IMG/VR virus record: IMGVR_UViG_3300020172_006270
Coordinates: 1-64,000 of that record
Direction: 5' to 3' (one strand)
DNA: 64,000 nt
The translations under genes were made by a program, and so were the position numbers. Shown here one piece after another: positions 20,064 through 47,298 of this stretch. The notes beneath the pieces are model-generated. The model did no database searches. It saw only the letters and a list, made by a program, of their open reading frames with translations, and was not told the DNA's origin. The number at the start of each line of letters is the position of its first letter. Within the stretch, counting starts at the first letter, position 1.

Positions 20064-21350
20064 ATGAAAATAATTGTAATCGGAGCAGGATTCTCCGGCC
20101 TTGCTTGTGCATACGAGCTAATGACCGCTGGTCATACCGTTCAAGTTCTGGAAGCTCGCAACCGAGTTGGTGGCCGAGTATACAGCAAAGACGATTTCAT
20201 CTCTGGCATGAACGTCGAATTCGGTGGAGAGCTTATCGGCTCGAACCATTATTCCTTAATCGGCTACGCTCTTGAGTTTGGCCTCGAATTCTTGGAAGCC
20301 GAAGATAATGATGCTGAAACACCGATCATACTGAAGCAACAAAAGCTGTCGCAGGTAGAGTACGGAAATATCAAAACAGAAATATCCAAAATGCAAAATG
20401 CGTTGTCGGAAATGGCTGTTGATATTGATGCTAACCAACCTTGGTTGTCTCCACGAGCCGAATATCTGGATCAGATTTCGATGCGAGAATGGATTTACAC
20501 TCAAGATGCTTCGGCAATATCCAAATATCTTTTCGATATTCAGGTATCGAGTGACAATGGCGTAACCTCTGATAAGCAAAGTCTTTTGGGCAACTTAGTT
20601 TTAATTCGAGGCGGTGGCCTCGATAAATTCTGGAGTGATACCGAAAGCTACCGCACCAAGGGCGGCAACCAACAATTCGCTTTGAAGTTTGCTCAAAAAT
20701 TAGGCACTCGATTAACTTTGAATTGCCCGGTAACTCATATCATCACCGAGCCAAATGTTGTTGTTGTAGATGCTCATGGCGTAAATCACGAGGCCGATAT
20801 TGTCGTATTGGCAATTCCACCTTCACTGTGGTCTACCATTTATTTCACGCCGGAATTACCTGAAGATTTCATTCCTCAAATGGGAATGAATATCAAGCAT
20901 CTCTCGGCAGTTGAAAGCAAATATTGGATCAACAAAAACGTGTCGCAAAATGCCAAAGGCGACAGAAAGATTAACGAAACATGGAACGGCACAGAGGGCC
21001 AAGTCCAGGTTGATTATTCTGCCATCGTGATATTCAGTGGTGGCGAATCTGCAAAATCAGTAAATGCTGAGAAGGAATTGCTTGATGAGTTGGAGGAGTT
21101 TTATCCAAATATCAACCAGTCTATTGTTCGCAGTGAACTGGTTAATTGGATAACTGATCGCTGGACAAAGTGCGGATATTCTTTCCCGGCACCTGGAGAG
21201 ATCACAAAGCTCGGCCCAATTTTGAGACAGGGCATTGGGAACCTGCATTTTGCAGGTGAACATACATGCTATAAGTTCATTGGATACATGGAAGGCGCAG
21301 TCACATCTGGTTCGGACTTGGCTGCAAGAATCATCAAAGAATTAAAATAA
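20064..21350 (+). CDS. Flavin monoamine oxidase family protein
   Basis: GAGFSGL, EARNRVGGR, FAGEHT, GYMEGA. Confidence 0.92.
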   Translation: MKIIVIGAGFSGLACAYELMTAGHTVQVLEARNRVGGRVYSKDDFISGMNVEFGGELIGSNHYSLIGYALEFGLEFLEAEDNDAETPIILKQQKLSQVEYGNIKTEISKMQNALSEMAVDIDANQPWLSPRAEYLDQISMREWIYTQDASAISKYLFDIQVSSDNGVTSDKQSLLGNLVLIRGGGLDKFWSDTESYRTKGGNQQFALKFAQKLGTRLTLNCPVTHIITEPNVVVVDAHGVNHEADIVVLAIPPSLWSTIYFTPELPEDFIPQMGMNIKHLSAVESKYWINKNVSQNAKGDRKINETWNGTEGQVQVDYSAIVIFSGGESAKSVNAEKELLDELEEFYPNINQSIVRSELVNWITDRWTKCGYSFPAPGEITKLGPILRQGIGNLHFAGEHTCYKFIGYMEGAVTSGSDLAARIIKELK

Positions 21351-21623
21351 CGTGCCTTGAATTGGCGGTTTATCTTGAGGTAATTTTTCTTGAGGCGGTG
21401 GCTCTATTTGGGTCGCCGCCTTATTTTTTACCATTTCCTTAATCTTGTTCAAGGCAGTCCAAGGCTTAAAACGTGCCAATTTTTGAAGTTGACGATGGTA
21501 AAGAGCATCGGTCACGAAAACGTACCGGGTGCTGTCAATGTAGACGATTATTGTCCCATCTTTCCACCAACTGCCGAATCTAATGTTTTGCCCTTCGTTC
21601 AAGAGCCATTCTCTGAAGTTCAT
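21342..21623 (-). CDS. Hypothetical protein, possible internal head protein
   Basis: MNFREWLLNE N-terminus; TATATA 5 nt before ATG. Confidence 0.6.
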   Translation of the reverse strand: MNFREWLLNEGQNIRFGSWWKDGTIIVYIDSTRYVFVTDALYHRQLQKLARFKPWTALNKIKEMVKNKAATQIEPPPQEKLPQDKPPIQGTLF

Positions 21624-21667
21624 GGATTTATATATTGGGCTTGGCACCTATTCAGATACGAGGTAAA

Positions 21668-22435
21668 ATGGCTGAAAACAAAAAAGAACACTTATTCTCG
21701 GAGAGTGATGTGCGACTCGAAGCAATTATCGACTACGAAATGGATGAACTTGAAGGCAAAGCGTATAAATTGTGCTTGCTCTGGCTCGATAGAAGTCGTA
21801 AAGTATTCCCTGAATATCAGCACACGACAATGAAGAAGGGCGACCCTCGAAAGTCGCTGATATTCAAAGTGTGCTACAAGCTGGCTCGTGAGACACAGGG
21901 CGTACTCGAAGAAAAAGACTACCCTTTGTATATCCGGGCGCAGCTTGATGTTCTCCGACACATCAATACCGGCAAGGGCCATCCTCTCATCGACGCAAAT
22001 TGTTTGGTGGGAGATAAAGCCTGGAAGCGGTGGAAATTATGGAAAAGAAAATATGATTCCATCTCTGCGAAGCCGTCCGAAGTATCCCAGCCTGTTGGTC
22101 CCGGCGTTATCAAAGCTCTCGAAGGACTTGAGCGAACCAAAGAGTTCTTCGCCAAAACCTTTGGAGCAAGTCCAAGTCTTGAAAAGTACCGGGAGTCCTA
22201 CATCAACAACAACCTCTTTCGCTGGGTTAATTTCGGCAAAATCAGCCCGTACTATATTGCAATGTCGCCGCACATTGCGGCAGTTATGAAGCCGGAAGAT
22301 TATAAGAGAATGAACTTCGATCCCGATCTGTACAAGCCCTGCATTACAGATGATGTAATTCGTAAGTTCAGGGAAATGTTTCCGCACGAGTTCGATAATT
22401 TTATTTCTGATTTCTCCACTGAGACAATAGGATAA
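21668..22435 (+). CDS. Hypothetical protein
   Basis: Long ORF; GAGGT RBS before ATG 21668. Confidence 0.7.
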   Translation: MAENKKEHLFSESDVRLEAIIDYEMDELEGKAYKLCLLWLDRSRKVFPEYQHTTMKKGDPRKSLIFKVCYKLARETQGVLEEKDYPLYIRAQLDVLRHINTGKGHPLIDANCLVGDKAWKRWKLWKRKYDSISAKPSEVSQPVGPGVIKALEGLERTKEFFAKTFGASPSLEKYRESYINNNLFRWVNFGKISPYYIAMSPHIAAVMKPEDYKRMNFDPDLYKPCITDDVIRKFREMFPHEFDNFISDFSTETIG

Positions 22436-22439
22436 GCAG

Positions 22440-22712
22440 ATGCTTTCTCCAAAAGAGTTTAGAACACTCATGGCAGAACAGGGACGTGAATACACTGTCG
22501 ATCAAGCGTCTAAAATACTACGCAATTTAATTTCGTTGAATAAAAAACTCAAGAAACAACCTGATTTGAGTTTGATGAGCCAACAAGAAAAGCAAAGATC
22601 GAGAATGGAAGCCGCAGAGCATGGCATGGAGATTTCTCCCGACGAATTTAATCAACTGCATGATCTAATGGTTGATATTCAACAATCAGATTTTGAGGAT
22701 TACAATTCATGA
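22440..22712 (+). CDS. Hypothetical protein
   Basis: Operonic ORF. Confidence 0.6.
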   Translation: MLSPKEFRTLMAEQGREYTVDQASKILRNLISLNKKLKKQPDLSLMSQQEKQRSRMEAAEHGMEISPDEFNQLHDLMVDIQQSDFEDYNS

Positions 22713-23425
22713 ACTTAGTCTATCTTCCCCTTAGTAGAACAAACTGTGATTATGCTGATTTATGGTTTGGCAATAGTAAAAACTACGACATACTTGTGAA
22801 CAATTGGGGCGACCCTGGCTTTTTTCGGGATCGAAACCCTGAGTTATACTTTGAAATCAAAGAACATAAATTTCGCACATTGTTGAGTCTCTATGGACGT
22901 AATTTCAAGACGTTAAGCAAATACGACTATGTGATGTGTCCCGATCCTGATCTGAAAATTAAAGTTCAGGACATCAACAAATTGTTTGACATGGCAAAGC
23001 AATATGACTTAGATTTATGTCAACCATCTATCACGGGACACCTTAATCATCCGTGTTTAGCTCCAGTAGATAACAAAAACATTCTCATTAGGCATCTGAA
23101 CTTGATCGAGCCTATGTGTCCAATATTTTCTCGCAAAGCTATGCTCTCTTGCTTGTGGACGTTTTCTTTGTCATACTCTGCATGGGGCCTTGATTTTGTT
23201 TGGCCAGTTATTGTCAGTAATGAAAAGAGGTCTAATGTTGGCGTCATCAATGGTATAAGCATAGAGCATACACGACCATGTGTTTCAAAGGATATTGTGT
23301 TCCCAAATGGCAAAAAGGCATGGGATGAACACCAAGAGACACTTACTGCGTTTGGGCTTACAAACGCCGTTAAAATTTACCACACAACTTCTATGTTTTC
23401 TTCAAAATCAAATTTTATGTTGTGA
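22709..23425 (+). CDS. DUF707-like GT-A fold protein
   Basis: YDYVMCPDPD, LCQPS, IEPMCPIFS, WGLDFVW, HTRP. Confidence 0.75.
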   Translation: MNLVYLPLSRTNCDYADLWFGNSKNYDILVNNWGDPGFFRDRNPELYFEIKEHKFRTLLSLYGRNFKTLSKYDYVMCPDPDLKIKVQDINKLFDMAKQYDLDLCQPSITGHLNHPCLAPVDNKNILIRHLNLIEPMCPIFSRKAMLSCLWTFSLSYSAWGLDFVWPVIVSNEKRSNVGVINGISIEHTRPCVSKDIVFPNGKKAWDEHQETLTAFGLTNAVKIYHTTSMFSSKSNFML

Positions 23426-23427
23426 CC

Positions 23428-24102
23428 ATGAACCAATACAAACAATACCTCGATCAATGTAAGCTCGACGACAAATATCCATTTGAGTTTTTTGGCTCTA
23501 AACCATTTGATTCAATAGATGTTGGTCAAGAATACACATTGAATGAACGGGAAATTAAAGCTACGGAAATCTTAGGACCGAAAAGAACTCAAGCTGCACG
23601 AGCCAGTGGCAAAGTGAATATGATTCAGGCTGCGTCTGGTGGCTCTGATAAAGAGAAGTTCATGGAAATCAATGGACTTCAAGGCGAATTACTTTATGCC
23701 AAGATGTTCGACCTTTATCCAGGTGAGCAATTGGAGATTCGTCCAAGAGATGCCAAAGACGATTTCGGAGATATAGTGCATGATGGCCTCAAGATTGACA
23801 TCAAGGCCACTGAGTACCACACAGGAAGGCTCACGCTTTCTCATTGGAAACAAGCGGAACACATTGATGCACTGTGTCTATTTACTGGAAAGAATGGCAG
23901 GTTTACGTTCCGTGGCTTCTATTGGGCAAAGGAATTAGCCAAAGAAGAAAACTTCCGTTGTTTGCCAGGACGAGATAAGCCACAATACATCATGGAACAA
24001 AGAAACTTGTTGTCGTTCGACGCCCTGAAAAATAGAACACCACAACAGCCCAACATAATTCAGTCGGCGACATCAATTACTGATTTTGACTATCTCCAAT
24101 AA
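23428..24102 (+). CDS. Hypothetical protein, possible PD-(D/E)xK nuclease fold
   Basis: GELL...GD...IDIK pattern. Confidence 0.45.
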   Translation: MNQYKQYLDQCKLDDKYPFEFFGSKPFDSIDVGQEYTLNEREIKATEILGPKRTQAARASGKVNMIQAASGGSDKEKFMEINGLQGELLYAKMFDLYPGEQLEIRPRDAKDDFGDIVHDGLKIDIKATEYHTGRLTLSHWKQAEHIDALCLFTGKNGRFTFRGFYWAKELAKEENFRCLPGRDKPQYIMEQRNLLSFDALKNRTPQQPNIIQSATSITDFDYLQ

Positions 24103-24111
24103 GGAAAAAGC

Positions 24112-24456
24112 ATGTGGTGTGTAGAAGACGAACGCAAGACTGGCCTCAAGAACGGCCTGCGACAATTAAGTGTAGAAGAGTTGCTGAAAGTGTTCTTGCA
24201 TCCTGAGCCAATGGTTCTGGACACATACAACTACGAAGATGGCAAGTTCTGCCCGTTGGCGGTAGCGTTGGGCCTGACCGATATGGCTGACCCTTCACAT
24301 GAGAAGGTGTATCAAGAATTGACCAGACTAGGCTATAAGGTCAACAACACTCGTGGGATCAAAGGTGACTTCTATACAATGAACCGCCTCGATGATCTGC
24401 TAGAGGCCACCGAGGAGGTTCTGTATGAGAAACTTCAAGACAAGAAAGCCGCTTAG
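24112..24456 (+). CDS. Hypothetical protein
   Basis: AAGGA RBS; FCPLAVALG motif. Confidence 0.65.
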   Translation: MWCVEDERKTGLKNGLRQLSVEELLKVFLHPEPMVLDTYNYEDGKFCPLAVALGLTDMADPSHEKVYQELTRLGYKVNNTRGIKGDFYTMNRLDDLLEATEEVLYEKLQDKKAA

Positions 24457-24998
24457 TATTTATCGTCAAGCAACGATACGTTCTTTGGTCGCAACCAAGT
24501 TAGCATATCATCCTTGCTCTTGAATCCAGAGTCACGGACAATAACAGTCTCAGATGTATCAATGACCATATAGGCAGGGATACCTGAGACTTTGTATTTT
24601 CTGGCCGTCGCACGATCTTTGTCGGTGTCGATGAGGCAAGTGACATATTCCTTGCCCAGCTTGTCCTTCACAGCCGCATCAGAAAGCGTTTCTGATTTCA
24701 TCTTCTTGCACCAACCGCACCACTCCGCACCGAAATACAAAAAGATTGGTCGATTGTGTTTCTTAGCGGCAGCTAACGCTTCTTGGTAGTTGCTGAAATT
24801 AGCCAGCACTTCTGGTGGTGCTACAGGTGGAGGAACCACAGGAGGCGTGACTGGCGGCGTCACAGGTGGAGCGACAGGATCAGTCATCTCAATAGGTGGT
24901 TTTACTGGCACAACATTATGTTTGCCGTATTTAACATACAAGGCACCGGCTCCAACTAAGAGCAGCGCAGCAATCAAGATTTTCTTTGAGTCCATCAT
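24453..24998 (-). CDS. Membrane-anchored thioredoxin-family protein
   Basis: N-terminal hydrophobic helix, Pro-rich linker, WCGWC, GIP. Confidence 0.88.
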   Translation of the reverse strand: MMDSKKILIAALLLVGAGALYVKYGKHNVVPVKPPIEMTDPVAPPVTPPVTPPVVPPPVAPPEVLANFSNYQEALAAAKKHNRPIFLYFGAEWCGWCKKMKSETLSDAAVKDKLGKEYVTCLIDTDKDRATARKYKVSGIPAYMVIDTSETVIVRDSGFKSKDDMLTWLRPKNVSLLDDKY

Positions 24999-25009
24999 TG
25001 TCCTCTGTT

Positions 25010-25828
25010 TTAATACTGTAAGAAGGTCTGAACTATACTGTCGATGATATTTTCGTGTTTCTGTTGAGGCGAATAATATTCATTGAACTCAGCAGGCTGA
25101 ACTTCCCACGAGTGTTGTCCAGTTGAAGAGTCAATATCGTAACCGAGACATCGGATCAATCCACGCTTTGGCTCCCAAACCATGTCGATGTTGAATTGTT
25201 CCGCACGACCTCCACCACTTCCGGCTTTTTGCCGATTTACTCCCTGTCCACGGAATTCAAATACGAGCTTGTAGTAATTTTCATTTTGCTGTCGCATCCC
25301 AATGGGGAACATGCAATATGACGGATGTTGACGTTTGGTTGCGGCCCATAGTTTCCACGACAACCGCTCTAATTCATCATACTCTTTGGCAGGCCCCGGA
25401 ACCATCTCATTGGAAACTTCCGTAAGCGTATCGTATACGTCGTGAGCAATGGCTGTTTCTTTATTTTCGGCTGCGTTATCGCCAAGTGGTATTACCTTGG
25501 TGCATATCCAAGTAGCCTCGCCGCATAGGTCTTTTGTCATTCTACGGACAACGACACGCATTGATCCTAGCGGCGTCACGCCCACCTGGATTGCCCCAGG
25601 ACCGACTCCCCATTCTACCACATCGTTCCATCGTTGAAGAGGACGATTAGGGCCAAGAGCCGGGAAACTCGCTAGTTCTGTGATGATTTTGCTGCCGTCT
25701 ACCGCTTTGAATAGAGTGTCCCCATCCATTGCCTCAATGCCGCCTTTCGGCTTGCCTCGTTGGTCATTGTCAAAGCCGAAATCGGCCATTTCGGATAACA
25801 TCCATTGCTTGAAAAGTAAACGGTTCAT
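25010..25828 (-). CDS. Hypothetical protein, possible internal head protein
   Basis: FKQWMLSEMA N-terminus; TATATA 5 nt before ATG. Confidence 0.65.
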   Translation of the reverse strand: MNRLLFKQWMLSEMADFGFDNDQRGKPKGGIEAMDGDTLFKAVDGSKIITELASFPALGPNRPLQRWNDVVEWGVGPGAIQVGVTPLGSMRVVVRRMTKDLCGEATWICTKVIPLGDNAAENKETAIAHDVYDTLTEVSNEMVPGPAKEYDELERLSWKLWAATKRQHPSYCMFPIGMRQQNENYYKLVFEFRGQGVNRQKAGSGGGRAEQFNIDMVWEPKRGLIRCLGYDIDSSTGQHSWEVQPAEFNEYYSPQQKHENIIDSIVQTFLQY

Positions 25829-25876
25829 GACTTTATATATAGGAACAGACTCAATTACTGCAAGGGAAGAAATGGT

Positions 25877-26893
25877 ATGGGAGCATTTAGAAGTTGGCTC
25901 AATATGAATGAAATGGCCGTCAAAACGACGAGCAGATTCGGAAAACCGATTCCGAATCTGGATAGTCGTGACGATGCTGGCCTAAAACATATGTCCCGTC
26001 CAGGTTTCCGTGATGTGGATCGAAACCTAATTCATCGGGATTCTCCTGAAGTTGAACGCAAGTTAACCCAGGCCACTGAAAAATACGGTATCCATTGGGT
26101 GATTGGATATTTGGAGCCAAAAGAAGACGCTGAAGAGAATAACCCAGCCCATTGGGATCAATATGCAGCCCAGGCAAAGCAAGACGGCCAGCAAATGCTC
26201 CAGCAGTTCAGTCAGGAATACAATCCGTCACAGTCGGTAGTTCCCATTGAGCCGCCCAACCCAGAAAATACGATTGTCTATATCAAGCCGACATCTCGTG
26301 TTCACAGCTTGACCCCACATGAACAAGTCCATAATATCGGCCACGCCTTGTGGCTGAGGAACCCTGCGCAGATGGCTCGTGCCAAACAAGAGCTTATGCA
26401 GGCGGTTCATGTATTGCAACAGTCGGCACATGAAGCTGACCCGCAGTCGCCGCCACCAACTGAAGCTGAAGTCACCATCATCTTGGCTCGATTGATTGAC
26501 TTGCTCTCCTACCAAAGAACTCTTACCCTAAACCCTGGTGATTTAGGCAGTTCTGTTAAGACCGCATTGACGGCATTCAATTCATTTGACGAAGTTATTT
26601 TCGATTTGATTCCAGCATTCGTAAATGCAGGTGGTCAGATTAACCTCTATCCAAGAGGCCCTGGAAAGATCGCTAAATTCGACCGCACGGGAGCAATCCC
26701 GCCAAATCAGGAGGTCATCCAGCAAAAGGGTGTGCGTCCGTGGGTGTGGGAAAAGATGGCGGCTGACCGAAACGCTTGGGCAGAGGTTTCTAAGATCATC
26801 ACTGGCATCGTAATTGAATGTTTGCAAGCCTCGACTTGGGCCAAGAAAGGCGGTCCCATTTACCCTTACCAAAAGTTGACTACCAAGCCATGA
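25877..26893 (+). CDS. Hypothetical protein, possible internal head protein
   Basis: FRSWLNMNEMA N-terminus; HEQVHNIGH motif. Confidence 0.65.
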   Translation: MGAFRSWLNMNEMAVKTTSRFGKPIPNLDSRDDAGLKHMSRPGFRDVDRNLIHRDSPEVERKLTQATEKYGIHWVIGYLEPKEDAEENNPAHWDQYAAQAKQDGQQMLQQFSQEYNPSQSVVPIEPPNPENTIVYIKPTSRVHSLTPHEQVHNIGHALWLRNPAQMARAKQELMQAVHVLQQSAHEADPQSPPPTEAEVTIILARLIDLLSYQRTLTLNPGDLGSSVKTALTAFNSFDEVIFDLIPAFVNAGGQINLYPRGPGKIAKFDRTGAIPPNQEVIQQKGVRPWVWEKMAADRNAWAEVSKIITGIVIECLQASTWAKKGGPIYPYQKLTTKP

Positions 26894-27027
26894 AAAACGA
26901 TAACACAGCATCATTACTTATCGGTTTGATCTTAGGGATCATTATCGGCTCTTTTCTCGGATATAAATATTCAGAACAACAACATGAACGTGACAATTCG
27001 TTTAAGATAAAAATAGGTGGTAATTGA
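26890..27027 (+). CDS. Small single-TM membrane protein
   Basis: LLIGLILGIIIGSFLGY; ATGA coupling. Confidence 0.5.
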   Translation: MKNDNTASLLIGLILGIIIGSFLGYKYSEQQHERDNSFKIKIGGN

Positions 27028-27311
27028 TGTTTAAGGTTTGGCTTACCGAAATGGAAAACAAAGGTTATGACTTCTACAAGAATATCCTTCTTGGTAAACT
27101 GAACCTTGACCGCACCCACGGCTTATCCCAAGGACTTGATGCTTGGGAACCAGAGCAGTTAATCAATGTTCTCAATGGACTTGGCGAGTTCAAAGAGTTG
27201 CGACAAGAAGTTCAAGATCAAGTCGTCGGGCAGATCAGAAGTCGGATGGGAACTCTTGGTGATCTCATCCGTATTATGTCTTCAACACCAACTTTAGGCA
27301 GCAATGGATGA
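27027..27311 (+). CDS. Hypothetical protein
   Basis: MFKVWLTEME N-terminus; AGGTGG RBS. Confidence 0.65.
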   Translation: MFKVWLTEMENKGYDFYKNILLGKLNLDRTHGLSQGLDAWEPEQLINVLNGLGEFKELRQEVQDQVVGQIRSRMGTLGDLIRIMSSTPTLGSNG

Positions 27312-28132
27312 CCACAATACTTGTTTGCGACCCAACGCATTATGGGATTGAATATGAAATCAATCCTTGGATGAGTGTCCAAAATCAAGCGGATCGAGAA
27401 TTAGCAATTCGCCAGTGGCACGGCTTAGTCAAATTGTTGAATGAAATCGGGACTACTGTACTGACCATGCCAGGGCAACCCGGCCTGCCAGATATGGTCT
27501 TCACGGCCAATGCTGGACTGGTATTTCGAGATCAAAGCACAGTCATGCTCTCGAACTTTAAGCATCCTGAGCGACAAGCCGAAAAGAAATATTACCAAGC
27601 ATGGTTTGAGGCAAACGACTTTGAAACATTGGAGCTTGCCTCATATTTTCATTTTGAAGGCGCTGGGGACGCTTTATTCAAAGAGCAAAACAGCAAAGAG
27701 AATTTCGAGAACAAACTCTACTTTGGATATGGGTTTCGCAGCGACTATGAGTCCGTAACGCACTCAGATTGGAGTCCCCTCTGGAAATTCCGCACCCAAT
27801 ACATTAAGCTGGTTGATCCTTATTTTTATCATTTGGATACTTGCTTTTGTCCTCTCAAAGATGATTATGCTTTGATTTGGCCAGGAGCTTTTGACGAAGA
27901 CACTGTATACGCATTAGAAGTTGACCTAGAATTACTTAGAGTACCAGAAGAGGACGCTCGCAAATTTGCCTGTAATGCGGTTGCCGTTGGCAACAAGGTC
28001 ATTATTCCAGCCGGTTGCGAAGCGACTAAGACTCTTCTGACTGGTGCAGGCTTTGAAGTATTCGACACCGATATGAGCGAATTCATCAAAGCGGGTGGTG
28101 CCTGTAAATGTTTAACTTTGAGGTTGGAATGA
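27308..28132 (+). CDS. Amidinotransferase / DDAH / arginine deiminase family protein
   Basis: INPWM, PDMVFTAN, FEGAGD, YHLDTCF, KAGGACKCLT. Confidence 0.92.
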   Translation: MTTILVCDPTHYGIEYEINPWMSVQNQADRELAIRQWHGLVKLLNEIGTTVLTMPGQPGLPDMVFTANAGLVFRDQSTVMLSNFKHPERQAEKKYYQAWFEANDFETLELASYFHFEGAGDALFKEQNSKENFENKLYFGYGFRSDYESVTHSDWSPLWKFRTQYIKLVDPYFYHLDTCFCPLKDDYALIWPGAFDEDTVYALEVDLELLRVPEEDARKFACNAVAVGNKVIIPAGCEATKTLLTGAGFEVFDTDMSEFIKAGGACKCLTLRLE

Positions 28133-34861: not shown

Positions 34862-34869
34862 CCGTCACT

Positions 34870-35571: not shown

Positions 35572-35573
35572 AC

Positions 35574-36383: not shown

Positions 36384-36391
36384 GGGCAATA

Positions 36392-37218: not shown

Positions 37219-37429
37219 AATCAAAACCACCAATGTTGATTTGAACAGCTTGGAGCCAACATATTTCAAGCTGGTGTTGACCACTTCGTTCTCGCCTGAA
37301 GAAATTCAGAAGTTGAATGAATTGGGCGGTGAACTCAAATACGATGGTGGATTGACCGCTCTCATTTTGATTCCACCCTTCAGAATTGAAGAATTCGCTC
37401 AGATCGAATCCATTCTTGAAGTTCGATAA
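37211..37429 (+). CDS. Hypothetical protein
   Basis: Coupled ORF starting MSKIK. Confidence 0.5.
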   Translation: MSKIKTTNVDLNSLEPTYFKLVLTTSFSPEEIQKLNELGGELKYDGGLTALILIPPFRIEEFAQIESILEVR

Positions 37430-37445
37430 AACTAATCCCATGCGG

Positions 37446-37453
37446 GCTAAATA
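37446..37453 (+). promoter_or_regulatory. Late-type promoter GCTAAATA (leaderless)
   Basis: 5 nt before ATG 37459; no RBS. Confidence 0.5.
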
Positions 37454-37458
37454 CTCGC

Positions 37459-38232
37459 ATGGGATTATCTTTTTCTAAGTGGTTGGTCGTCAGCGAGGTC
37501 TTTAGACTCGATCTAGGCCACGTTTTAACGCTCGCAGAAGCCCTGGAACTCTCTCCAGAGGCCCAGGCACGCATTGATAAGACCAAATCAGGCTATCAGC
37601 CAGGACCGCACTCCAGCGATCACCTTGTCGCTGCAATCCTTGGCTACAAGCCTGCCGCCATCGTTCTCTATGCTCATCATCCCGAAAGCCCCGCTGCGGC
37701 TATCGTCACGGATGCACTCAAAAAGGGCGATTCAGGCCGCATTCAGGCCGAGCTTCTTGCTCATGGAATTAAGGTTAGACCTGATTTTCACATTATCCAT
37801 ATGAATCTTCCTGGATATTCAACTGCAAATATCATGGTGGGCGGCAAAGCAGCAGTTGAAGAGTTATGGAAAGTCTACCAATGTCAGTTTTATTTGGATC
37901 AAATAAGTTCTGACGACCATTCTGCTGTTACTCCTGAAATGATGGCCAAAGTAAACAATGTTATGCGTGGCAGATGCGAAGTTCTCTGCAAGAGGGGTTA
38001 TGGCGGCATGAATTGCCAACCAATTCATAAAAGAATTGGGGAATTACTCGGATACACAGACCAGCAAGTTGATGACTTCCTAAAATCAATGGGAGGGTTT
38101 AAGCACATGCCGGATGTAGAATACCCGTTTGAATTACCACCAGCTTTGGCTGCTGCACCAAAGAAAAAAGGCTTTGAACCTCATGAGTCAAGAAACCACT
38201 TTATTCGATCTAAAGCCCCCTCGTTTATTTGA
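37459..38232 (+). CDS. Hypothetical protein, possible internal head protein
   Basis: FSKWLVVSE N-terminus; KPAA...IGELLGY. Confidence 0.65.
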   Translation: MGLSFSKWLVVSEVFRLDLGHVLTLAEALELSPEAQARIDKTKSGYQPGPHSSDHLVAAILGYKPAAIVLYAHHPESPAAAIVTDALKKGDSGRIQAELLAHGIKVRPDFHIIHMNLPGYSTANIMVGGKAAVEELWKVYQCQFYLDQISSDDHSAVTPEMMAKVNNVMRGRCEVLCKRGYGGMNCQPIHKRIGELLGYTDQQVDDFLKSMGGFKHMPDVEYPFELPPALAAAPKKKGFEPHESRNHFIRSKAPSFI

Positions 38233-39196: not shown

Positions 39197-40098
39197 AAAG
39201 TGCCATTGTAAGTATTGTTCGTAATGAATCTGACATTATTGAGTTGTTTGTTAGGTATCATGCCAGAATATTCGATCATGTATTCATTATCGACCATCTA
39301 AGCAAAGACGGCACATCAGAGATACTTGCATCTTTGGTCAAAGAAGGCTTGCCTCTTACAGTAACGCAATCGACTTCTTTCTATCATGCTCAAGGCGAGG
39401 CAATTACTGTGCTTCTTAAAGAAATCCGACAGAAGCATAAGCCATCCGTTTTAATGGCCATTGATGCCGATGAATTTGTTGTGGGAGACATCCGACAGGC
39501 TGCTCACGATTTGCCTCGAAACTTCCCTTGTACGCTGTCTGCTTTATGGTGGAACTACGCTCCAACCAAAGATTTGAATCTCCATGTGCTAAGAGACATC
39601 TGTTATCGAAATAAACAGATCAACCCAAACCAGCATAAGACTTTAATTCCAGGTCCGATATTGGATATGAATGTTCACATGCGAGAAGGTTGTCATGAGG
39701 TATATTTTGGAGATGTTGTATTGCGAATGGTGATTTCGCCTCATCTTCATTTGGCTCATTTCCCAATTCGCTCGGCAGAACAGTTCATGAAAAAAGCCCT
39801 GGTTGGCTGGACGGCAAAACTAGCTAATCCAGCCAATCGAGGGCTACGACCAGATTGGTCACATTGGAAGATGTTCTTTGATCGTGCTAAGAAAGGGATC
39901 GCTCTCTCACTAACTGAGTTGCAGAATTTGGCACTCGGCTACACGGTTGACCATCTTGCAACTGAGAGTGATCTGGTGCTTGACCCGGTAGCAAGTGACG
40001 GACTTGACATAAAATACCCATGCGACGACAAATACCTGCCATTTGAAGCCCTGGCTGACGCCGCTGAATTGCTGGCCGCTGAACTTGGACGGGCTTAG
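39193..40098 (+). CDS. Glycosyltransferase family 2 (2_4-type)
   Basis: VRNESD, DHLSKDGT, IDADEF, HFPIRS. Confidence 0.88.
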   Translation: MKSAIVSIVRNESDIIELFVRYHARIFDHVFIIDHLSKDGTSEILASLVKEGLPLTVTQSTSFYHAQGEAITVLLKEIRQKHKPSVLMAIDADEFVVGDIRQAAHDLPRNFPCTLSALWWNYAPTKDLNLHVLRDICYRNKQINPNQHKTLIPGPILDMNVHMREGCHEVYFGDVVLRMVISPHLHLAHFPIRSAEQFMKKALVGWTAKLANPANRGLRPDWSHWKMFFDRAKKGIALSLTELQNLALGYTVDHLATESDLVLDPVASDGLDIKYPCDDKYLPFEALADAAELLAAELGRA

Positions 40099-40777
40099 GG
40101 TTAAGACCCACAAATCGCTCATAGCCGCCTTCGTATGTCACTCCCCATAGGTGATCGCAATATACTGGCCCCGGTCCAGTATACATCGACCCAGCATAGT
40201 GCTTGGGAATGAAATAATGTGAAGGATGCACCTTAATGGGATACTTGTTTGATTGAACAATATGAGTAAAGTAAGCAGGGCCGACATACCACCATGCTGG
40301 ACTCGCCACCTTATCAATCCCCTCAATACATAGGTTCATCAATTCGCATCGAGGCTGACAAGCCATAAAGCCACAGGCAATCAGACCACCACGTTGCTTC
40401 TCTCCTTCATAGACCGACATGCAATCATACTCGAACAATTTGTTTTCTAATGGCCTAATGCAAATTGTGTCGGCGTCTACGAAAAATCCACCCATGCGGT
40501 GAAGTATTTCGTATCGCATTATGTCGCACTTCCCATTAGGCTCAGACATATAGTCAAGTTTTTCTTGATTGCGAAACTTCCATTCCTTGAGTGTTTTGTC
40601 TGTCCACAATATGTGTTTCCACCCAGGATTCTGTTCTTTCCAGGTGTTAATCAGGTTCATTGGAGGATTTTCGCCAATCCACATTTGGTGAATGATCTTA
40701 GGGATCATCTTGCTTTTCTTCGGTGTATTTTCACCCAGCGGCCACCATAAATGGTCTGGATTGTAATTTGGCATCAT
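39887..40777 (-). CDS. GT32 (OCH1-like) glycosyltransferase; alternative start 40708
   Basis: IPKIIHQMW, DIMRYEIL, GGFFVDAD, VGP, HLW. Confidence 0.88.
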   Translation of the reverse strand: MMPNYNPDHLWWPLGENTPKKSKMIPKIIHQMWIGENPPMNLINTWKEQNPGWKHILWTDKTLKEWKFRNQEKLDYMSEPNGKCDIMRYEILHRMGGFFVDADTICIRPLENKLFEYDCMSVYEGEKQRGGLIACGFMACQPRCELMNLCIEGIDKVASPAWWYVGPAYFTHIVQSNKYPIKVHPSHYFIPKHYAGSMYTGPGPVYCDHLWGVTYEGGYERFVGLNPKPVQVQRPAIQRRQPGLQMAGICRRMGILCQVRHLLPGQAPDHSQLQDGQPCSRVPNSATQLVRERSLS

Positions 40778-40791
40778 TTTTTCCGAACTCC

Positions 40792-40799
40792 ACTATATA
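40792..40799 (+). promoter_or_regulatory. Late-type promoter ACTATATA
   Basis: Upstream of the collagen-fibre genes. Confidence 0.4.
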
Positions 40800-40844
40800 A
40801 AACGACTGCTTGACGCTGCTTTAAGAGAGTGGAGAAACAAAAGA

Positions 40845-42323
40845 ATGCCAATAGTAATAACGAAACCAGTGCTTACAGCAACCTATTTAGTGGTTGATGA
40901 GAATGGCACTGTTATTTCGTCTCACCCTCAAAATATCGAGATCGAGTCAGTAGACGCCGATAGTTTTTTGCAAGCTCTAAGTGATTTGATGCTGGCAAAA
41001 GACGGCCTTGAACTCACCGCTAGTGAAGTTCATATGTTGATACGCACTGGCAATATGATTTCTCTCGGTAACGTCCAAGCTGCCACTCTCGGCGTTCAGA
41101 GCCAATATCAATTCCCCACAGCGGTTGGATCGACCGGGCAGGTTATTGGGTATCAAGGCACGAGCCAGTTGGCATGGGTTAACTCAGGTAGTGGCGCTCA
41201 AGGCTTTCAAGGAAACCAAGGCGCACAGGGCAATCAAGGCGCACAAGGAAATCAAGGCAATCAAGGAAACCAGGGGTTTGCAGGCTCGGTTGGTTCACAA
41301 GGTTTTCAGGGCAATCAAGGCAATCAGGGAAATCAAGGCACACAAGGCAACCAAGGGAACCAGGGATTCCAAGGTTCTGCCGGTACTGTCGGAAATCAAG
41401 GATTTCAAGGTAATCAAGGTAATCAGGGAAACCAAGGAACACTAGGAAACCAAGGCAACCAGGGATTACAAGGTTCTGCTGGTACGGTTGGTTCACAAGG
41501 ATTCCAGGGAAACCAAGGCAATCAGGGTAATCAAGGCACTCAAGGCAACCAAGGAAACCAAGGCAACCAAGGAAACCAAGGAACCGCTGGATCACAGGGT
41601 TTTCAAGGCAACCAAGGCGCACAAGGTAATCAGGGAAATCAGGGCAACCAAGGCACACAAGGTTTCCAAGGCAATCAGGGTAATCAAGGAACTGCTGGCG
41701 CACAAGGATTCCAGGGCAACCAAGGCAATCAGGGAAATCAGGGCAACCAAGGCACGCAAGGTTTCCAAGGCAATCAGGGCAACCAAGGAACTGCTGGCGC
41801 ACAAGGATTCCAGGGAGTTCAAGGCGCACAAGGAAATCAAGGATCACAAGGAAACCAGGGCATTTCTGGCTTAGGGTTTAGTGTTCCTTATACATTCAAC
41901 ACAAGCACAGTGATGTCGGCGGCTTCTGGAGAAGTTCGATTCAATAATGCTACGATTGCATCTATTACCAATATCGACATCTCAAGAACAGATCGCAATG
42001 GTGCTGGTCAGCAAGCTGTGTTGGATCGCATGTCATCTGGCACATTGTTTAGATTCTCTGCCGAAGCTAGTGCTACACAATACAACTTCTTCCAAGCCAA
42101 TAGCGTAACGAAGAATGCTCAAGATTATAACTTTGCTGTTGCATACTTGTCGAACAATGGATCGTTGTTCTCTAACTCAGCAAATATTGGTTTGGGAATT
42201 GCCATGATCGGCTACCAGGGCAATCAGGGCGCTCAAGGCTTCCAGGGCTACCAAGGCTTCCAGGGCGCTCAAGGCGCACAAGGACACCAGGGCAACCAAG
42301 GTAATCAAGGAGGAGGCATATAA
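40845..42323 (+). CDS. Collagen-like (G-X-Q)n fibre protein
   Basis: Long GNQ/GFQ/GAQ triplet run flanked by non-repeat domains. Confidence 0.88.
   Translation: MPIVITKPVLTATYLVVDENGTVISSHPQNIEIESVDADSFLQALSDLMLAKDGLELTASEVHMLIRTGNMISLGNVQAATLGVQSQYQFPTAVGSTGQVIGYQGTSQLAWVNSGSGAQGFQGNQGAQGNQGAQGNQGNQGNQGFAGSVGSQGFQGNQGNQGNQGTQGNQGNQGFQGSAGTVGNQGFQGNQGNQGNQGTLGNQGNQGLQGSAGTVGSQGFQGNQGNQGNQGTQGNQGNQGNQGNQGTAGSQGFQGNQGAQGNQGNQGNQGTQGFQGNQGNQGTAGAQGFQGNQGNQGNQGNQGTQGFQGNQGNQGTAGAQGFQGVQGAQGNQGSQGNQGISGLGFSVPYTFNTSTVMSAASGEVRFNNATIASITNIDISRTDRNGAGQQAVLDRMSSGTLFRFSAEASATQYNFFQANSVTKNAQDYNFAVAYLSNNGSLFSNSANIGLGIAMIGYQGNQGAQGFQGYQGFQGAQGAQGHQGNQGNQGGGI
41193..41861 (+). repeat. 9-bp degenerate collagen repeat (GGN-NNN-CAR)
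   Basis: Directly visible ggcaaccaa/ggaaatcaa units. Confidence 0.9.
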
Positions 42324-42324
42324 A

Positions 42325-43929
42325 TTGATAATCACGATTAAACCACAAATATCGGTTAGACTTCTTAAAGCAGATGGTGATACCATCCTGTCTGCTCATG
42401 ATAAATCTATCGACGTTGATTTGGTTGCCGATGATTTCATCTCTGCATTCAATACTTTGTTTGCCGACAAAGACGATTATCAACTTGTTGAAAGACCTAT
42501 TGTTTCGACCAATTTCTTATTGGTAAACAATAATGATGTTGTTGTGGCAACTCATCCACAAAGAATTGAACTTGGATTGAACATCGAGAGCTTTTTGGAT
42601 GGCATGAATAAGCTGATCGAAATTCGAGATGGCTTAGGCGGCGTGAATGCGTTGCTCACAATGGGCAATATCATTTCACTCGGCAATGTGCAGGCTGTAT
42701 CTCTTGGCATTCAAAGCCAGTATACGTTTCCAACGACAGCCGGAGTGACTGGACAAGTCATTGGCTATCAAGGCACATCTCAATTGGAATGGATCAGTGG
42801 TGCTACTGGTTTGCAAGGCCCTCTTGGTCTTCAGGGTCGGCAAGGAAATCAGGGGAATCAAGGCAACCAAGGCACGCAGGGCTTCCAGGGCGTTGGATCG
42901 CAAGGCTCGCAAGGCTTTCAAGGCAACCAAGGTCGTCAAGGAAACCAGGGCAACCAAGGCAATCAAGGCAACCAAGGATTTCAAGGTGTTGGATCGCAAG
43001 GCTCTCAAGGCGCACAGGGAAACCAAGGTCGTCAAGGAAACCAGGGGAATCAAGGCAACCAAGGTACACAAGGTTTTCAAGGGTCTGGCTCGCAAGGTCT
43101 GCAAGGCGCTCAGGGAAACCAAGGCAACCAAGGTGTACAAGGCAACCAAGGAACGCAAGGCAACCAAGGCCGACAAGGAAATCAGGGAGCCGGTCTGCAA
43201 GGCGCACAGGGAAACCAAGGTCGTCAAGGCAACCAAGGAAATCAAGGCAATAGAGGCTTACAGGGTCCGCAGGGCCGACAAGGAAATCAGGGAGCCGGTC
43301 TGCAAGGTCGGCAAGGCAACCAAGGAACACAAGGAAGACAAGGCAACCAAGGCAATCAAGGCTTTCAAGGTCGCCAAGGCAACCAAGGTTTAGGACTTCA
43401 GGGGCGACAAGGCTTTCAAGGCAACCAGGGGAATCAAGGCTTTCAAGGCAATCAGGGAGTTATCGCTCCTGGGTTTGTGTTGCCGCTCGCATTCAACACA
43501 AGCACCGTAATGTCGGCGGCATCTGGAGAGTTGAGATTCAACAACGCTACTGTTGCATCTGTGACCAATATTGACGTGTCGAGAACCGATAGAAATGGTT
43601 CTGGTCAACAGGGCGTGCTTGATAAATTTGGTAATGGCACTTTGTTTTTCTTTACGTCTGAAGCGGTAGCTTCTCAGTATAGTTTTTTCACTACTACTGG
43701 CGTGACGAAGAATGCAAGTGACTATAACTTCAGCGTTAGCTATATTTCTAATGCTGGTACTTTGTTTGCTAACTCACAAAATGTGAGTATGGGTGTTGCT
43801 CTGCTTGGATTCCAAGGAATCAGCTTGCAGGGCGCTCAAGGCTTCCAAGGACGCCAAGGCTCTCAAGGCTTCCAAGGACACCAAGGCAACCAAGGCGATC
43901 CTGGTGGTCCGGTTATTGAAGACCCTTAA
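42325..43929 (+). CDS. Collagen-like (G-X-Q)n fibre protein, paralogue of 40845..42323
   Basis: Shares GNxISLGNVQA...GQVIGYQGTSQL and FNTSTVMSAASGE...SRTDRNG. Confidence 0.88.
   Translation: MIITIKPQISVRLLKADGDTILSAHDKSIDVDLVADDFISAFNTLFADKDDYQLVERPIVSTNFLLVNNNDVVVATHPQRIELGLNIESFLDGMNKLIEIRDGLGGVNALLTMGNIISLGNVQAVSLGIQSQYTFPTTAGVTGQVIGYQGTSQLEWISGATGLQGPLGLQGRQGNQGNQGNQGTQGFQGVGSQGSQGFQGNQGRQGNQGNQGNQGNQGFQGVGSQGSQGAQGNQGRQGNQGNQGNQGTQGFQGSGSQGLQGAQGNQGNQGVQGNQGTQGNQGRQGNQGAGLQGAQGNQGRQGNQGNQGNRGLQGPQGRQGNQGAGLQGRQGNQGTQGRQGNQGNQGFQGRQGNQGLGLQGRQGFQGNQGNQGFQGNQGVIAPGFVLPLAFNTSTVMSAASGELRFNNATVASVTNIDVSRTDRNGSGQQGVLDKFGNGTLFFFTSEAVASQYSFFTTTGVTKNASDYNFSVSYISNAGTLFANSQNVSMGVALLGFQGISLQGAQGFQGRQGSQGFQGHQGNQGDPGGPVIEDP
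42808..43458 (+). repeat. 9-bp degenerate collagen repeat
   Basis: GNQ/GRQ/GLQ triplets. Confidence 0.9.
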
Positions 43930-43930
43930 A

Positions 43931-44143
43931 TCATGGGCTTTTGGTATTAGTTGCATCAACTGGCGTGTCATCGGCCTTGCCGACATCGGCATTTTCCAAT
44001 ACTTTGTTGATGTAGATGATGTAGTCTTCTTGCCCTGCTTTATATCCTTGGTGATAACCAACGACATAGCCGCAAGTGATGTACACGAGTGCCAACAGCA
44101 TAAACAATAATACTGATGGTATTTTCTTAATGAATCTCATCAT
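43931..44143 (-). CDS. Small membrane protein
   Basis: TM segment followed by GYHQGYKAG. Confidence 0.6.
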   Translation of the reverse strand: MMRFIKKIPSVLLFMLLALVYITCGYVVGYHQGYKAGQEDYIIYINKVLENADVGKADDTPVDATNTKSP

Positions 44144-44445
44144 AGTGATTTCACATAATCTTGGATTTTGAAGTAATCGCCGACGATACGTCTAATGCGT
44201 TCGTCGGCATCTTTGTAAAGGCGATTACGGCGACCCCGTTCTTCATCGCCTTGTTCTTGCACGAACTTCTCGAAGCCGCACAAATAGCACCACACCCAAT
44301 ATCGTTTGTTTCTCAGTTTTTCAATGACATAGCTGTGGTATGCGTCCCAACTGAGATTCCATTTCTTGAATAATTTGGAGTAGCGTTCCTCCATCATCTT
44401 GATTTGGTTCTCGTAAAACTCTGGCTCGTAATCAGGAGTATCCAT
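44140..44445 (-). CDS. Hypothetical protein
   Basis: Coupled to the helicase stop. Confidence 0.6.
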   Translation of the reverse strand: MDTPDYEPEFYENQIKMMEERYSKLFKKWNLSWDAYHSYVIEKLRNKRYWVWCYLCGFEKFVQEQGDEERGRRNRLYKDADERIRRIVGDYFKIQDYVKSL

Positions 44446-45893
44446 TAGAAATCAATTTCCTTAATTTTGACTTCGTGACCTTCCTCAGTCAGAATTTTAA
44501 TTCTTTTCTTTGAGTGATCCTGGAGATAATCGTTGATTTCAAACAGGAAGTCATAATAGTTCAAATCTTCTTTGTCATCAGCGGTACGAAGACCTCGACC
44601 CATTCTTTGAATAATCAAGTGGTCGGCCTGACCGCCAGCAGCGTTAATCAAATTATGAACAAATACGTTGATGCCGGTATTGAAAATTTGTTGCGTAGCA
44701 ATCGCTATACATTCTTTATCCTTTTGAAGTTGCTTCACAACACTCTTTCGGGTTGCCTGAGTATCTTTTCCCTGAACCCAGATACTTCCCGGCAGCAGGT
44801 TATGTAGGGCATCTCCGTGAGCAATTCGATCCACCAAGATCAAAGTTCTGCCAGTCTGCTTCTTGGCCAATCTAGTTACAATTTTATGGAAGTGATAGCT
44901 TTCAGCAATACCTCTGGTTACGGCATCAATATAGATGTCGTGAGGAATCATTGGTTCTCTGATCGGATAAAACGTACAATTCGAGTTAGAAAGAATGCCT
45001 CTGCCTTGAAGCTCGGCAGTGGTCAATACGCCTGTCGCCGCACTCTTTACCTTGAGGATAGGGCCAAAGAATCCTCGAACGTGGAACTTCTGCACGTTGT
45101 CTTTGCCGCCGAATTTGAATGGTGTGGCACTAACGGCGACTCGCACATCGCAGGCTTTTAGACGACGATATACAGCTTTTGGCAAAGCACTCATCATATC
45201 GTGAATTTCGTCTACGATAAGCACTTTGATCTTAGGCAAAAGTTTTTCAATTTTGGCAACACTTTGAACGCTGGCAACCGTGATAATATTTGGATTGGCC
45301 GCACCGCCCCAAAGAGTGCCTACATTATTGAATCCCCAATTTTTGATTTCATCGTAGTTTTGTTGAGCCAACGTAACCCGGTTTTGCAAAACAAGAGTAG
45401 GTGTCCCAGGCGGGATAGATTTTAGAATGCCCAACATGATGAATGTTTTACCAGCACTCGTCGGAGCATAAATGACTCCACGACGATGCTTGAGGACTTG
45501 ATTGACCAATTCGACTTGGTAATCATGTAATATAACTGGCTTCATTGGGTCGCCGCCCAATGTTGTAGCTGGTAGCCATTGATTCAAAAAGTTTTGGTCG
45601 ATTGAATCAAAAAGGAAAGGAGTCTTTTTTCGGTTATCTTCTACAGTGAAGTCAACTTTGAAATGTCTGAGAACAGCGGTGACTTCAGGAAGTAAACCTG
45701 TGAGAAACTTACCTGTTTCGAGAGCGAAGAATTGGATATAACCGTCCCACTTCCGCATTTTGTATGCACGGTTATGGAAGTAGTTCCGGTCCCTGAATCT
45801 CAGACGATCCCAAATCTCGTGCTTCGTCTGTAGGTCTTCCGACAGGAAATACGAGTAATCGTTCTCTATTCTCAATATGTTCGTGTTGCTCAT
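44445..45893 (-). CDS. uvsW: SF2 DNA helicase, UvsW-like
   Basis: DYQ, APTSAGKT, DEIH, SATP, TGIN, QRMGRGLR. Confidence 0.88.
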   Translation of the reverse strand: MSNTNILRIENDYSYFLSEDLQTKHEIWDRLRFRDRNYFHNRAYKMRKWDGYIQFFALETGKFLTGLLPEVTAVLRHFKVDFTVEDNRKKTPFLFDSIDQNFLNQWLPATTLGGDPMKPVILHDYQVELVNQVLKHRRGVIYAPTSAGKTFIMLGILKSIPPGTPTLVLQNRVTLAQQNYDEIKNWGFNNVGTLWGGAANPNIITVASVQSVAKIEKLLPKIKVLIVDEIHDMMSALPKAVYRRLKACDVRVAVSATPFKFGGKDNVQKFHVRGFFGPILKVKSAATGVLTTAELQGRGILSNSNCTFYPIREPMIPHDIYIDAVTRGIAESYHFHKIVTRLAKKQTGRTLILVDRIAHGDALHNLLPGSIWVQGKDTQATRKSVVKQLQKDKECIAIATQQIFNTGINVFVHNLINAAGGQADHLIIQRMGRGLRTADDKEDLNYYDFLFEINDYLQDHSKKRIKILTEEGHEVKIKEIDF

Positions 45894-46018
45894 TTTTTGT
45901 GTCTATCGCCTGAGTTTGTATCGTCTTCCTGGCACGGGTTATTCTACCAGATTTACTGCCTCTTGTACCACTCCGTTTTGACCCACAACACATGGCATTT
46001 CCTCACTTAAAATAACTT

Positions 46019-46330
46019 ATGTCAAGTATATATGCCCCTGAAATCGTGTTGAACATACAATCACATCAAATTGTTCCACAGCAGCGTAAGCTAAAAGCTG
46101 TATGGTCAGTAGAGGCAGCACAAGATTTACAGTCTTGGAATACACCAGAACAAGAATTGGCTGATTTGATGGCGCAAGAAATTGCGAACGAGATCGACAA
46201 GGAAATCCTTGAAGACCTCGCTCGCAATGCACGGGAAGCCGCTGAAGAGGAATTACGGTTTAAGAACCGGAAAAAGAAAATCCTGCCAAGGTCTATCAAT
46301 GACGATTGGCAGGTTTCAAGGTTTGATTAA
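46019..46330 (+). CDS. Mini-protein containing a T4 gp23-like major capsid segment
   Basis: RKLKAVWSVEAAQDL...ELADLMAQEIANEIDKEIL resembles gp23 RQLKAAYSIELAQDL...ELSGILATEIMLEINREV (recalled). Confidence 0.7.
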   Translation: MSSIYAPEIVLNIQSHQIVPQQRKLKAVWSVEAAQDLQSWNTPEQELADLMAQEIANEIDKEILEDLARNAREAAEEELRFKNRKKKILPRSINDDWQVSRFD

Positions 46331-46929
46331 GCTGGCAATAGTTTGTGTCGCACGAGTTTGACGACCATCAGGGCGTCCTCAAGTGCAGTATGGGCCACTT
46401 CTCCGGCCATTCCTGCTCGTTCCAGACACGTTGCCGAGTCTGGCAGAGTCTTATCCCCAGGCTGGTAATACAAGATCGCTGGGTCAATAACACGATGCAG
46501 GATCGTAATGTCGCCCCAATGCTTCTTGAGCTTCTTGTTCAAGAATGGCAGATCGAACATGGCGGCATTCTTCCCAGCCACAGTAATCTTGACTCGACCA
46601 CTCTTAGGGTCTTCAGGAACGCCGTTTTGAGTCAAGAAATTCTTGAATGCGAATGGCAAGTCAAGAATGTGCATAAATCGGTCGCCGAATTCGTTCTCTT
46701 CAATACGCTTCTTTTGGGCGTCGGCGATTTTCTTGAATATTTGAGGGTGCATACCCAGGGCATATGGCTCGCCAGTATATGTTGGCTGGGTGAAATGGGT
46801 CTGAAACTTAGGGAGCTTTTCAAGTGGCTGTGGATTAGACAGATCGTCAATCACGGCTGCAAACTGGACAATATCGCAGGTTTTTGGATTGAGTCCCGTG
46901 GTTTCAATGTCAATTGAGCAGTAAAGCAT
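46327..46929 (-). CDS. DEDDh 3'-5' exonuclease
   Basis: DIETTG, NAAMFD, ID, HTALED. Confidence 0.9.
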   Translation of the reverse strand: MLYCSIDIETTGLNPKTCDIVQFAAVIDDLSNPQPLEKLPKFQTHFTQPTYTGEPYALGMHPQIFKKIADAQKKRIEENEFGDRFMHILDLPFAFKNFLTQNGVPEDPKSGRVKITVAGKNAAMFDLPFLNKKLKKHWGDITILHRVIDPAILYYQPGDKTLPDSATCLERAGMAGEVAHTALEDALMVVKLVRHKLLPA

Positions 46930-47015
46930 AGTTTATTCCTTGGTTTTGAATGGCTGGCAAAATATCAGAATAGCAGGATCATTTGTTTCGAGCCAGAGAT
47001 ATTTGTAGTTTGCAA

Positions 47016-47023
47016 CCTAAATA
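47016..47023 (+). promoter_or_regulatory. Late-type promoter CCTAAATA (leaderless)
   Basis: 5 nt before ATG 47029. Confidence 0.5.
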
Positions 47024-47028
47024 AAGGC

Positions 47029-47298
47029 ATGAAAACCTTTACCCAATATCTCCGTGACACCAATAGACTCGATGAGGGTCTAATGGATTTCTTCCGTGGC
47101 AAGAAGCACGTTGAGCCGACACCACCAGCCGATGACCCTGTATCCAAATGGAAGGCCATGCGCCAAAAGTCCACTCTGGGACAGTTTGATAAAACCGGCC
47201 CAGATCAGGACGCTCCAGCAGACGACGGCGAAGCAGATGTTATGGCAGCAATGAGCCGCAAACCAATGCGTTCTCGTAAAATGTCAAACAAGCGTTAA
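47029..47298 (+). CDS. Small hypothetical protein, possible internal head protein
   Basis: MKTFTQYL...LDE, similar to the T4 capsid-targeting sequence. Confidence 0.65.
   Translation: MKTFTQYLRDTNRLDEGLMDFFRGKKHVEPTPPADDPVSKWKAMRQKSTLGQFDKTGPDQDAPADDGEADVMAAMSRKPMRSRKMSNKR

Follow-up and report, generated by a model that had tools for sequence, protein, structure and literature searches.

A tag resembling the T4 capsid targeting sequence at the N-termini of otherwise unrelated proteins of a huge uncultivated phage

Introduction

The internal proteins IpI, IpII and IpIII of bacteriophage T4 carry an N-terminal capsid targeting sequence (Mullaney and Black 1996, reviewed in PMC9026906, PMC3012670 and PMC12373910). 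For packaging of IpIII its first ten residues are enough. Residues 4 and 7 are the main determinants of targeting, residues 8 and 10 govern processing, and the T4 prohead protease gp21 cleaves after L/I-x-E (PMC9026906). All three of these injected proteins are known to block type IV restriction enzymes, and at least ten Ip proteins have been reported from the T-even phages together (PMC12373910). Here we describe a short N-terminal tag of similar layout in the IMG/VR virus record IMGVR_UViG_3300020172_006270. The analysis started from a window of 64 kb, the first part of this 223,268-bp record, and was extended to the whole record, to which all coordinates refer. We find that the tag opens about 22 genes and that its likeness to the T4 signal is the best explanation of it. 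We put the probability that it is a T4-type capsid targeting sequence at about 70%.

The record (G+C content 45.8%, completeness 46% by CheckV estimate) is part of an uncultivated huge phage genome with a T4-type head. In GenBank it is closest to LR756511.1, a 595-kb uncultured phage without annotation, at 72% nucleotide identity across the capsid gene; at least 205 IMG/VR contigs encode close relatives of its prohead protease. Megablast with a 6-kb part of the window matched none of the GenBank phages.

Results

The original prediction held that six unrelated proteins encoded between positions 21342 and 47298 share an N-terminal tag ending in Glu, and it proposed a genome-wide search for the motif. 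All six strings were found at the positions claimed, each immediately 3' of a start codon, and the proteins are indeed unrelated apart from the tag: all-versus-all BLASTP of their bodies gave a best E of 0.3, and a profile-profile comparison of the bodies of two tagged families gave a probability of 7.6%. On these results we rejected the idea that the six are paralogues. All six are real, but six proved to be an undercount. Open reading frames (ORFs) were called with a simple hexamer-scored picker, no alternative genetic code was applied in translation, and each candidate start was inspected directly. Among the 2,331 ORFs of at least 50 residues with an ATG start in the whole record, the strict motif, F-x-x-[WY]-[LM]-x(1-7)-E starting at residues 2-7, opens 14; 20 Markov-2 random genomes averaged 0.45 (range 0-2), and displacing the same test 25, 35 or 45 residues into the ORFs gave none. 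A looser motif, [FY]-x-x-[FWY]-[LIMV]-x(1-7)-E, is found in 24 distinct ORFs (random-genome mean 3.0; 2-5 at internal positions), and a six-frame scan of ORFs of at least 60 residues placed 15 of 23 strict matches no more than 6 residues from the start codon. Our count of about 22 tagged genes takes the looser-motif ORFs, leaves out three that are implausible and adds one near-member. The encoded proteins are 66 to 338 residues long and the genes are distributed along the entire record, in part in clusters. The first aromatic residue is encoded by TTC 12 times and by TTT 10 times, and nine different codons serve the aliphatic position. Since synonymous codons vary freely at conserved residues, selection acts on the peptide and not on the DNA.

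Each tag has an aromatic pair at i and i+3 and an aliphatic residue at i+4, followed zero to seven residues later, mostly three, by Glu. The first aromatic lies at residues 2-6 in this record. Set against the T4 signal, the aromatics fall at residues 4 and 7 and the aliphatic-x-Glu at the processing residues 8 and 10. In 17 tags the residue two before Glu is independent of the motif; it is L, V or M in 12 of these, compared with a background of 0.23 (binomial P = 4e-5). In the T4 record AF158101, IpII and IpIII open with MKTYQEFIAE followed by A, while IpI opens with MKTFKEF and is cut further along; as a positive control, the same scan applied to 87 kb of T4 recovered ipII and ipIII. Two other openings in AF158101 resemble the tag: a small ORF after uvsW (114210-114440, plus strand) begins M-L-L-E-F-K-Q-F-L-Y-E-A, and gp57B, which is Acb1 (73952-74410, minus strand), begins M-M-E-F-K-D-F.

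Orthologues retain the tag even where identity falls to 33-36%. In the 338-residue protein of the window, called gene 3 below, F4 and W7 are kept in at least 90% of 21 orthologues, down to 33% identity, and the Glu-Met-Ala junction is retained. The tag is present in 58 of 69 homologues of the 272-residue gene 2 protein and in 18 of 23 homologues of the 257-residue gene 5 protein; the untagged homologues are mostly fragments, or gene calls that take as their start the Met directly following the predicted cut. In 80 related head-module loci, which total 950 kb, 114 ORFs are tagged; the first aromatic is at residue 4 in 71 of them, and L, I, M or V stands two before Glu in 69. Among them are tags almost identical to the T4 signal, which open with M-K-T-F and close with L-A-E and then A. 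In LR756511.1, whose public pieces were joined solely for the tag scan, 49 ORFs are tagged, including proteins of 508 to 1,040 residues, against about 4 in random genomes. Several tagged proteins of our record have orthologues there that are tagged as well, with a different tag sequence.

Several head proteins of T4 type are encoded in the record. A prohead protease of the Peptidase_S77 family (187673-188356; 91.7 bits) shares 34% identity with T4 gp21 across 140 residues; it conserves the residues aligned with gp21 His85 and Ser140, which we take to be the catalytic ones. The major capsid protein belongs to the gp23 family (293 bits, 29% identity to T4 gp23), and a Portal_T4 protein is also encoded (249.7 bits). 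The N-terminus of the capsid protein has F-L-N-E-A at residues 7-11 and two more L-x-E sites before residue 26, which fits a protease with an aliphatic-x-Glu preference. Between the protease and capsid genes sits the gene for an acidic, helical protein of 298 residues, in the place of gp22 in T4. A complex prediction of the protease with tag residues 1-36 scored 0.02, which is evidence neither way. The head module also contains a 675-residue ORF with an uncertain start codon (188380-190407, minus strand), between the portal region and the protease gene. Far from this module, two short ORFs match internal or C-terminal pieces of the gp23 family (46037-46351, plus strand, 55.8 bits; 177667-177978, minus strand, 51 bits). 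Each adjoins tagged genes and the first contains a TAA; they could be remnants of a capsid-gene duplication or small functional proteins.

The six tagged genes of the window differ in size, strand and upstream sequence. Gene 1 (21342-21623, minus strand) encodes 93 residues with an isoelectric point of 9.7. Its tag, MNFREWLLNE (residues 1-10, 21594-21623, minus strand), has a predicted cut after LNE, and a TATATA box (21629-21634, minus strand) stands 5 nt 5' of the ATG, without a Shine-Dalgarno sequence. Gene 2 (25010-25828, minus strand) likewise has a TATATA box 5 nt 5' of its ATG (25834-25839, minus strand). Its product of 272 residues opens with MNRLLFKQWMLSE (25828; residues 1-13, 25790-25828, minus strand), predicted to be cut after LSE, and the mature start is conserved as M-A-D-F/Y-G-F. 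A Shine-Dalgarno sequence precedes gene 3 (25877-26893, plus strand), whose tag MGAFRSWLNMNE (25877; residues 1-12, 25877-25912, plus strand) would be cut after MNE. The same holds for gene 4 (27027-27311, plus strand; 94 residues), where the Shine-Dalgarno sequence is AGGTGG and the tag MFKVWLTE (residues 1-8, 27027-27050, plus strand) has its predicted cut after LTE. Gene 5 (37459-38232, plus strand) begins with MGLSFSKWLVVSE (37459; residues 1-13, 37459-37497, plus strand; predicted cut after VSE), 5 nt 3' of a TAAATA box (37448-37453, plus strand). Gene 6 (47029-47298, plus strand; 89 residues, isoelectric point 9.6) has the same box at the same distance (47018-47023, plus strand) and a long tag of 16 residues, MKTFTQYLRDTNRLDE (47029; 47029-47076, plus strand), with a predicted cut after LDE; it opens with M-K-T-F, as does T4 IpI.

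None of the six window proteins matched a family in Pfam or PHROGs, and ESM Atlas features for gene 5 returned sub-threshold hypothetical clusters only. The AlphaFold model of the gene 3 protein has a predicted local distance difference test score (pLDDT) of 90.7, with tag residues 4-9 below 50, and that of the gene 2 protein scores 82.3 with a low-confidence N-terminus, so that in both the tag lies beyond the folded body as a low-confidence extension. Foldseek searches of the two models against the PDB found nothing at E <= 0.001, and an exhaustive VIA-align search with the gene 3 model gave Z scores no higher than 4.4, its matches to zinc peptidases being weak. A His cluster, H-[EQ]-Q-[VIL]-H-N-[IM]-G-H, is conserved in the gene 3 protein; we rejected it as a classical HExxH zincin motif because the Glu is replaced by Gln in many orthologues. 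The original prediction had seen the six as candidates for anti-defence or host-takeover effectors. As there is no Pfam, PHROG or solved-fold match, nothing ties them to defence.

Outside the window, some tagged proteins resemble enzymes. The one encoded at 209286-209843 scores 34.9 bits with Pfam Acb1 (cut-off 27) and has both H-x-T motifs. The generic 2_5_RNA_ligase2 family scores higher, 38.8 bits, also above its cut-off, so the Acb1 match does not fix the substrate, and we predict an Acb1-like 2H phosphoesterase. Its pairwise similarity to T4 Acb1 (gp57B, which is anti-CBASS, that is, directed against cyclic-oligonucleotide-based antiphage signalling) is weak (E = 1e-4), and unlike T4 Acb1 it has an N-terminal extension, which bears the tag. 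To our knowledge, T4 Acb1 is not known as a packaged protein. Another tagged protein has a sub-threshold GNAT match, and the near-member is a helix-turn-helix protein. In LR756511.1 one tagged protein contains the head domain of a poly(A)/CCA-type nucleotidyltransferase (91 bits) and another a domain of the 2H cyclic phosphodiesterase type; the tagged 2H and nucleotidyltransferase enzymes lie in pieces L112:12579-13121 and L115:31780-33303. These matches suggest that tagged enzymes may be pre-packaged to degrade signalling nucleotides or repair tRNA ends. The tagged set is probably mixed, comprising enzymes (the Acb1-kind 2H phosphoesterase, possibly a GNAT protein), small basic or acidic proteins of the size of T4 Ip proteins, and low-complexity proteins.

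About half of the tagged genes (12 of 22) have TA(A/T)ATA 4-5 nt 5' of the ATG and no Shine-Dalgarno sequence. Across all ORFs of at least 40 residues in the record, the distance from box to ATG has a sharp peak at 4 nt, with 11 cases, and 5 nt, with 6. The box is under-represented in the record overall, nothing upstream of it is conserved, there is no conserved -35 element, and several boxes are preceded by a hairpin and a T-run. There are 17 such box-ATG sites in the record and 50 in LR756511.1, and the arrangement is not exclusive to tagged genes, the tag being absent from 5 of the 17 and 39 of the 50. The late promoter of T4 is a bare TATAAATA centred near -10. With a T4-late-like box near -10 and a 5-nt spacer, the A of the ATG would be the transcript start, which suggests that the box-ATG genes may be transcribed as leaderless late mRNAs. 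A search of the record, itself about 46% complete, found no homologue of T4 gp55, and a look-up of RNA sequencing runs containing the locus listed none. Because many tagged genes are without a Shine-Dalgarno sequence, gene callers often pick a later Met and lose the tag; the tag itself corrects the annotation of gene starts.

The neighbourhood of the six genes is a mosaic of non-structural genes, including an amine oxidase, glycosyltransferases, a polynucleotide kinase-phosphatase, collagen-repeat proteins, a helicase, an exonuclease and a Bax-inhibitor-like protein. The collagen triple-helix repeats occur in two large adjoining proteins (40845-42323 and 42325-43929, plus strand; 141 and 107 bits), which are probably fibres. 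A family A DNA polymerase domain is encoded at 17958-19268 (minus strand). T4's own DNA polymerase is of family B, and with a family A enzyme in a phage that has T4-like head genes the genome appears mosaic. Two genes for class II aminoacyl-tRNA synthetases lie near the end of the window, one of the D/K/N type (59328-60719, minus strand; 280.7 bits) and one of the G/H/P/S/T type with an anticodon-binding domain (62872 to beyond 64000, minus strand). At the contig edge (1-90), a 15-bp unit is repeated six times in tandem, in frame with an ORF that runs off the end.

Discussion

That the tag resembles the T4 capsid targeting sequence was already part of the original prediction, and the likeness passes the sequence-level tests of tag layout, of protease, capsid protein and portal, and of conservation in orthologues and across the clade. 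If the tag works as it does in T4, it would be a propeptide of 8 to 16 residues in which two aromatics, at i and i+3 of a short helix, dock the protein onto the assembling prohead core. The closing aliphatic-x-Glu would then be cut by the gp21-family prohead protease of the phage, the mature protein would be left inside the head, and it would be delivered into the host along with the DNA. Core binding, cleavage after Glu, presence in the virion, delivery into the host and any anti-defence role are all steps that we infer from sequence.

Several points weigh against this reading. Five of the 17 independent tags are without an aliphatic residue two before Glu, and a loose member at 150748 has no Glu in range. 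The looser motif has a background of about 3 per random genome, so that a few of the 22 may be chance, and the scan of 87 kb of T4 gave, besides ipII and ipIII, four other unannotated or unexplained matches, which again means that the loose pattern has background. The 298-residue protein that takes the place of gp22 shows no pairwise similarity to its T4 counterpart, so that it is a candidate docking partner of the tag by gene position. Finally, the consensus here is F-x-x-W-L with a variable spacer, whereas that of T4 is Y-x-x-F-I-A-E; the common grammar could therefore reflect convergence and not the same receptor.

A different outcome of the same targeting deserves to be weighed first, namely that most tagged proteins are core, scaffold or DNA-packing components, which are degraded or retained in the head and not injected. 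T4 itself directs gp67, gp68 and IpIII to the core. Several tagged proteins here are of low complexity and rich in Pro, Gly or Gln (86326, 95741 and 159219), and a further one, at 190454-190855, is encoded within the head module and conserved in nearly every related locus; these may be prohead core components and not effectors. Other tagged proteins, however, are folded, enzyme-like and scattered among non-structural genes; examples are the Acb1-like 2H phosphoesterase, the nucleotidyltransferase of the relative and the proteins of 272 and 338 residues in the window. A single N-terminal cut site moreover suggests that an intact mature protein is freed and not degraded. As an account of most of the set, we consider this unlikely.

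Somewhat less probable still is that the tag serves as an N-terminal signal that has nothing to do with the capsid, such as an amphipathic helix for membranes, a handle for a phage chaperone or a stability signal. With two aromatics and a Leu, a helix this short could bind to many surfaces, and the gp22-position protein is not similar to gp22. A signal of this kind, however, leaves unexplained the enrichment of aliphatic-x-Glu, which the specificity of a co-encoded gp21-type protease predicts, as well as the near-T4 tags in relatives and the boxes that resemble late promoters. A nucleic-acid signal, needed for example to translate leaderless mRNA, might instead have produced the conserved N-terminus as a side effect. 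This would suit the half of the tagged genes with a promoter-like box abutting the ATG and no Shine-Dalgarno sequence, but it is largely refuted by the free variation of synonymous codons, and is very improbable also given the same tag on genes with an ordinary Shine-Dalgarno sequence (25877, 27027, 184429 and 190454) and the box-abutted ORFs without a tag in both genomes.

Returning to the capsid targeting sequence, the kind of signal is not new: it has long served to recognise the ip genes of T-even phages (PMC12373910). What is new is its presence, scale and range of cargo in huge uncultivated phages of a distant clade, as well as the frequency of the box-ATG arrangement. If the T4 grammar holds in this clade, the tag becomes a key, read from sequence alone, that lists dozens of probable head-packaged proteins per genome, a pool mostly without known fold in which to find counter-defence and host-takeover functions. 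Going further, and tentatively, huge T4-related phages might possess a compact portable cassette, in which a late-promoter box is followed directly by the ATG of a leaderless mRNA and by a tag of 10-13 residues. Through it any acquired gene would yield a late-made, head-packaged and injected protein, giving an arsenal of 20-50 different proteins. We regard this as a speculative extension that is itself rather unlikely. Were it true, an arsenal including a signal-degrading 2H phosphoesterase and tRNA-end repair enzymes would act before phage gene expression.

How does the tag compare with known systems? In the phiKZ-like giants 201phi2-1 and SPN3US, a large internal protein load also includes many head-internal proteins cut after Glu by a diverged gp21 homologue; most propeptides there are longer than 100 residues, with S/A/G-x-E or A-x-E as the cleavage motif (PMC5694885). 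These phages are of another lineage and have no short common aromatic tag. Closer to the present case, the propeptides of T4 gp24, gp23 and Alt are cut by the same T4 protease after L-x-E (gp24 after residue 10; gp23 after L-T-E, at residue 65) but are without the aromatic pair, and the capsid protein of our record likewise has the F-L-N-E part alone. The closest match is with the T4 Ip proteins. Common to both are a propeptide of about 10-19 residues at the extreme N-terminus of otherwise unrelated proteins, a gp21-family protease, gp23 capsid protein and T4-type portal in the same genome, and genes that are scattered and partly clustered outside the head module. The two differ in the spacer to Glu, which here varies from 0 to 7 residues and is most often 3, and in their head proteins, which are 29-34% identical to those of T4. 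The ip genes of T4 have Shine-Dalgarno leaders, while in about half of the genes here the box lies directly against the ATG. The scale is also different: against three Ip proteins in T4, there are about 22 tagged genes in this 46%-complete record and about 49 in its 595-kb relative, and the cargo extends to enzymes and, in the relative, to proteins of up to about 1,000 residues.

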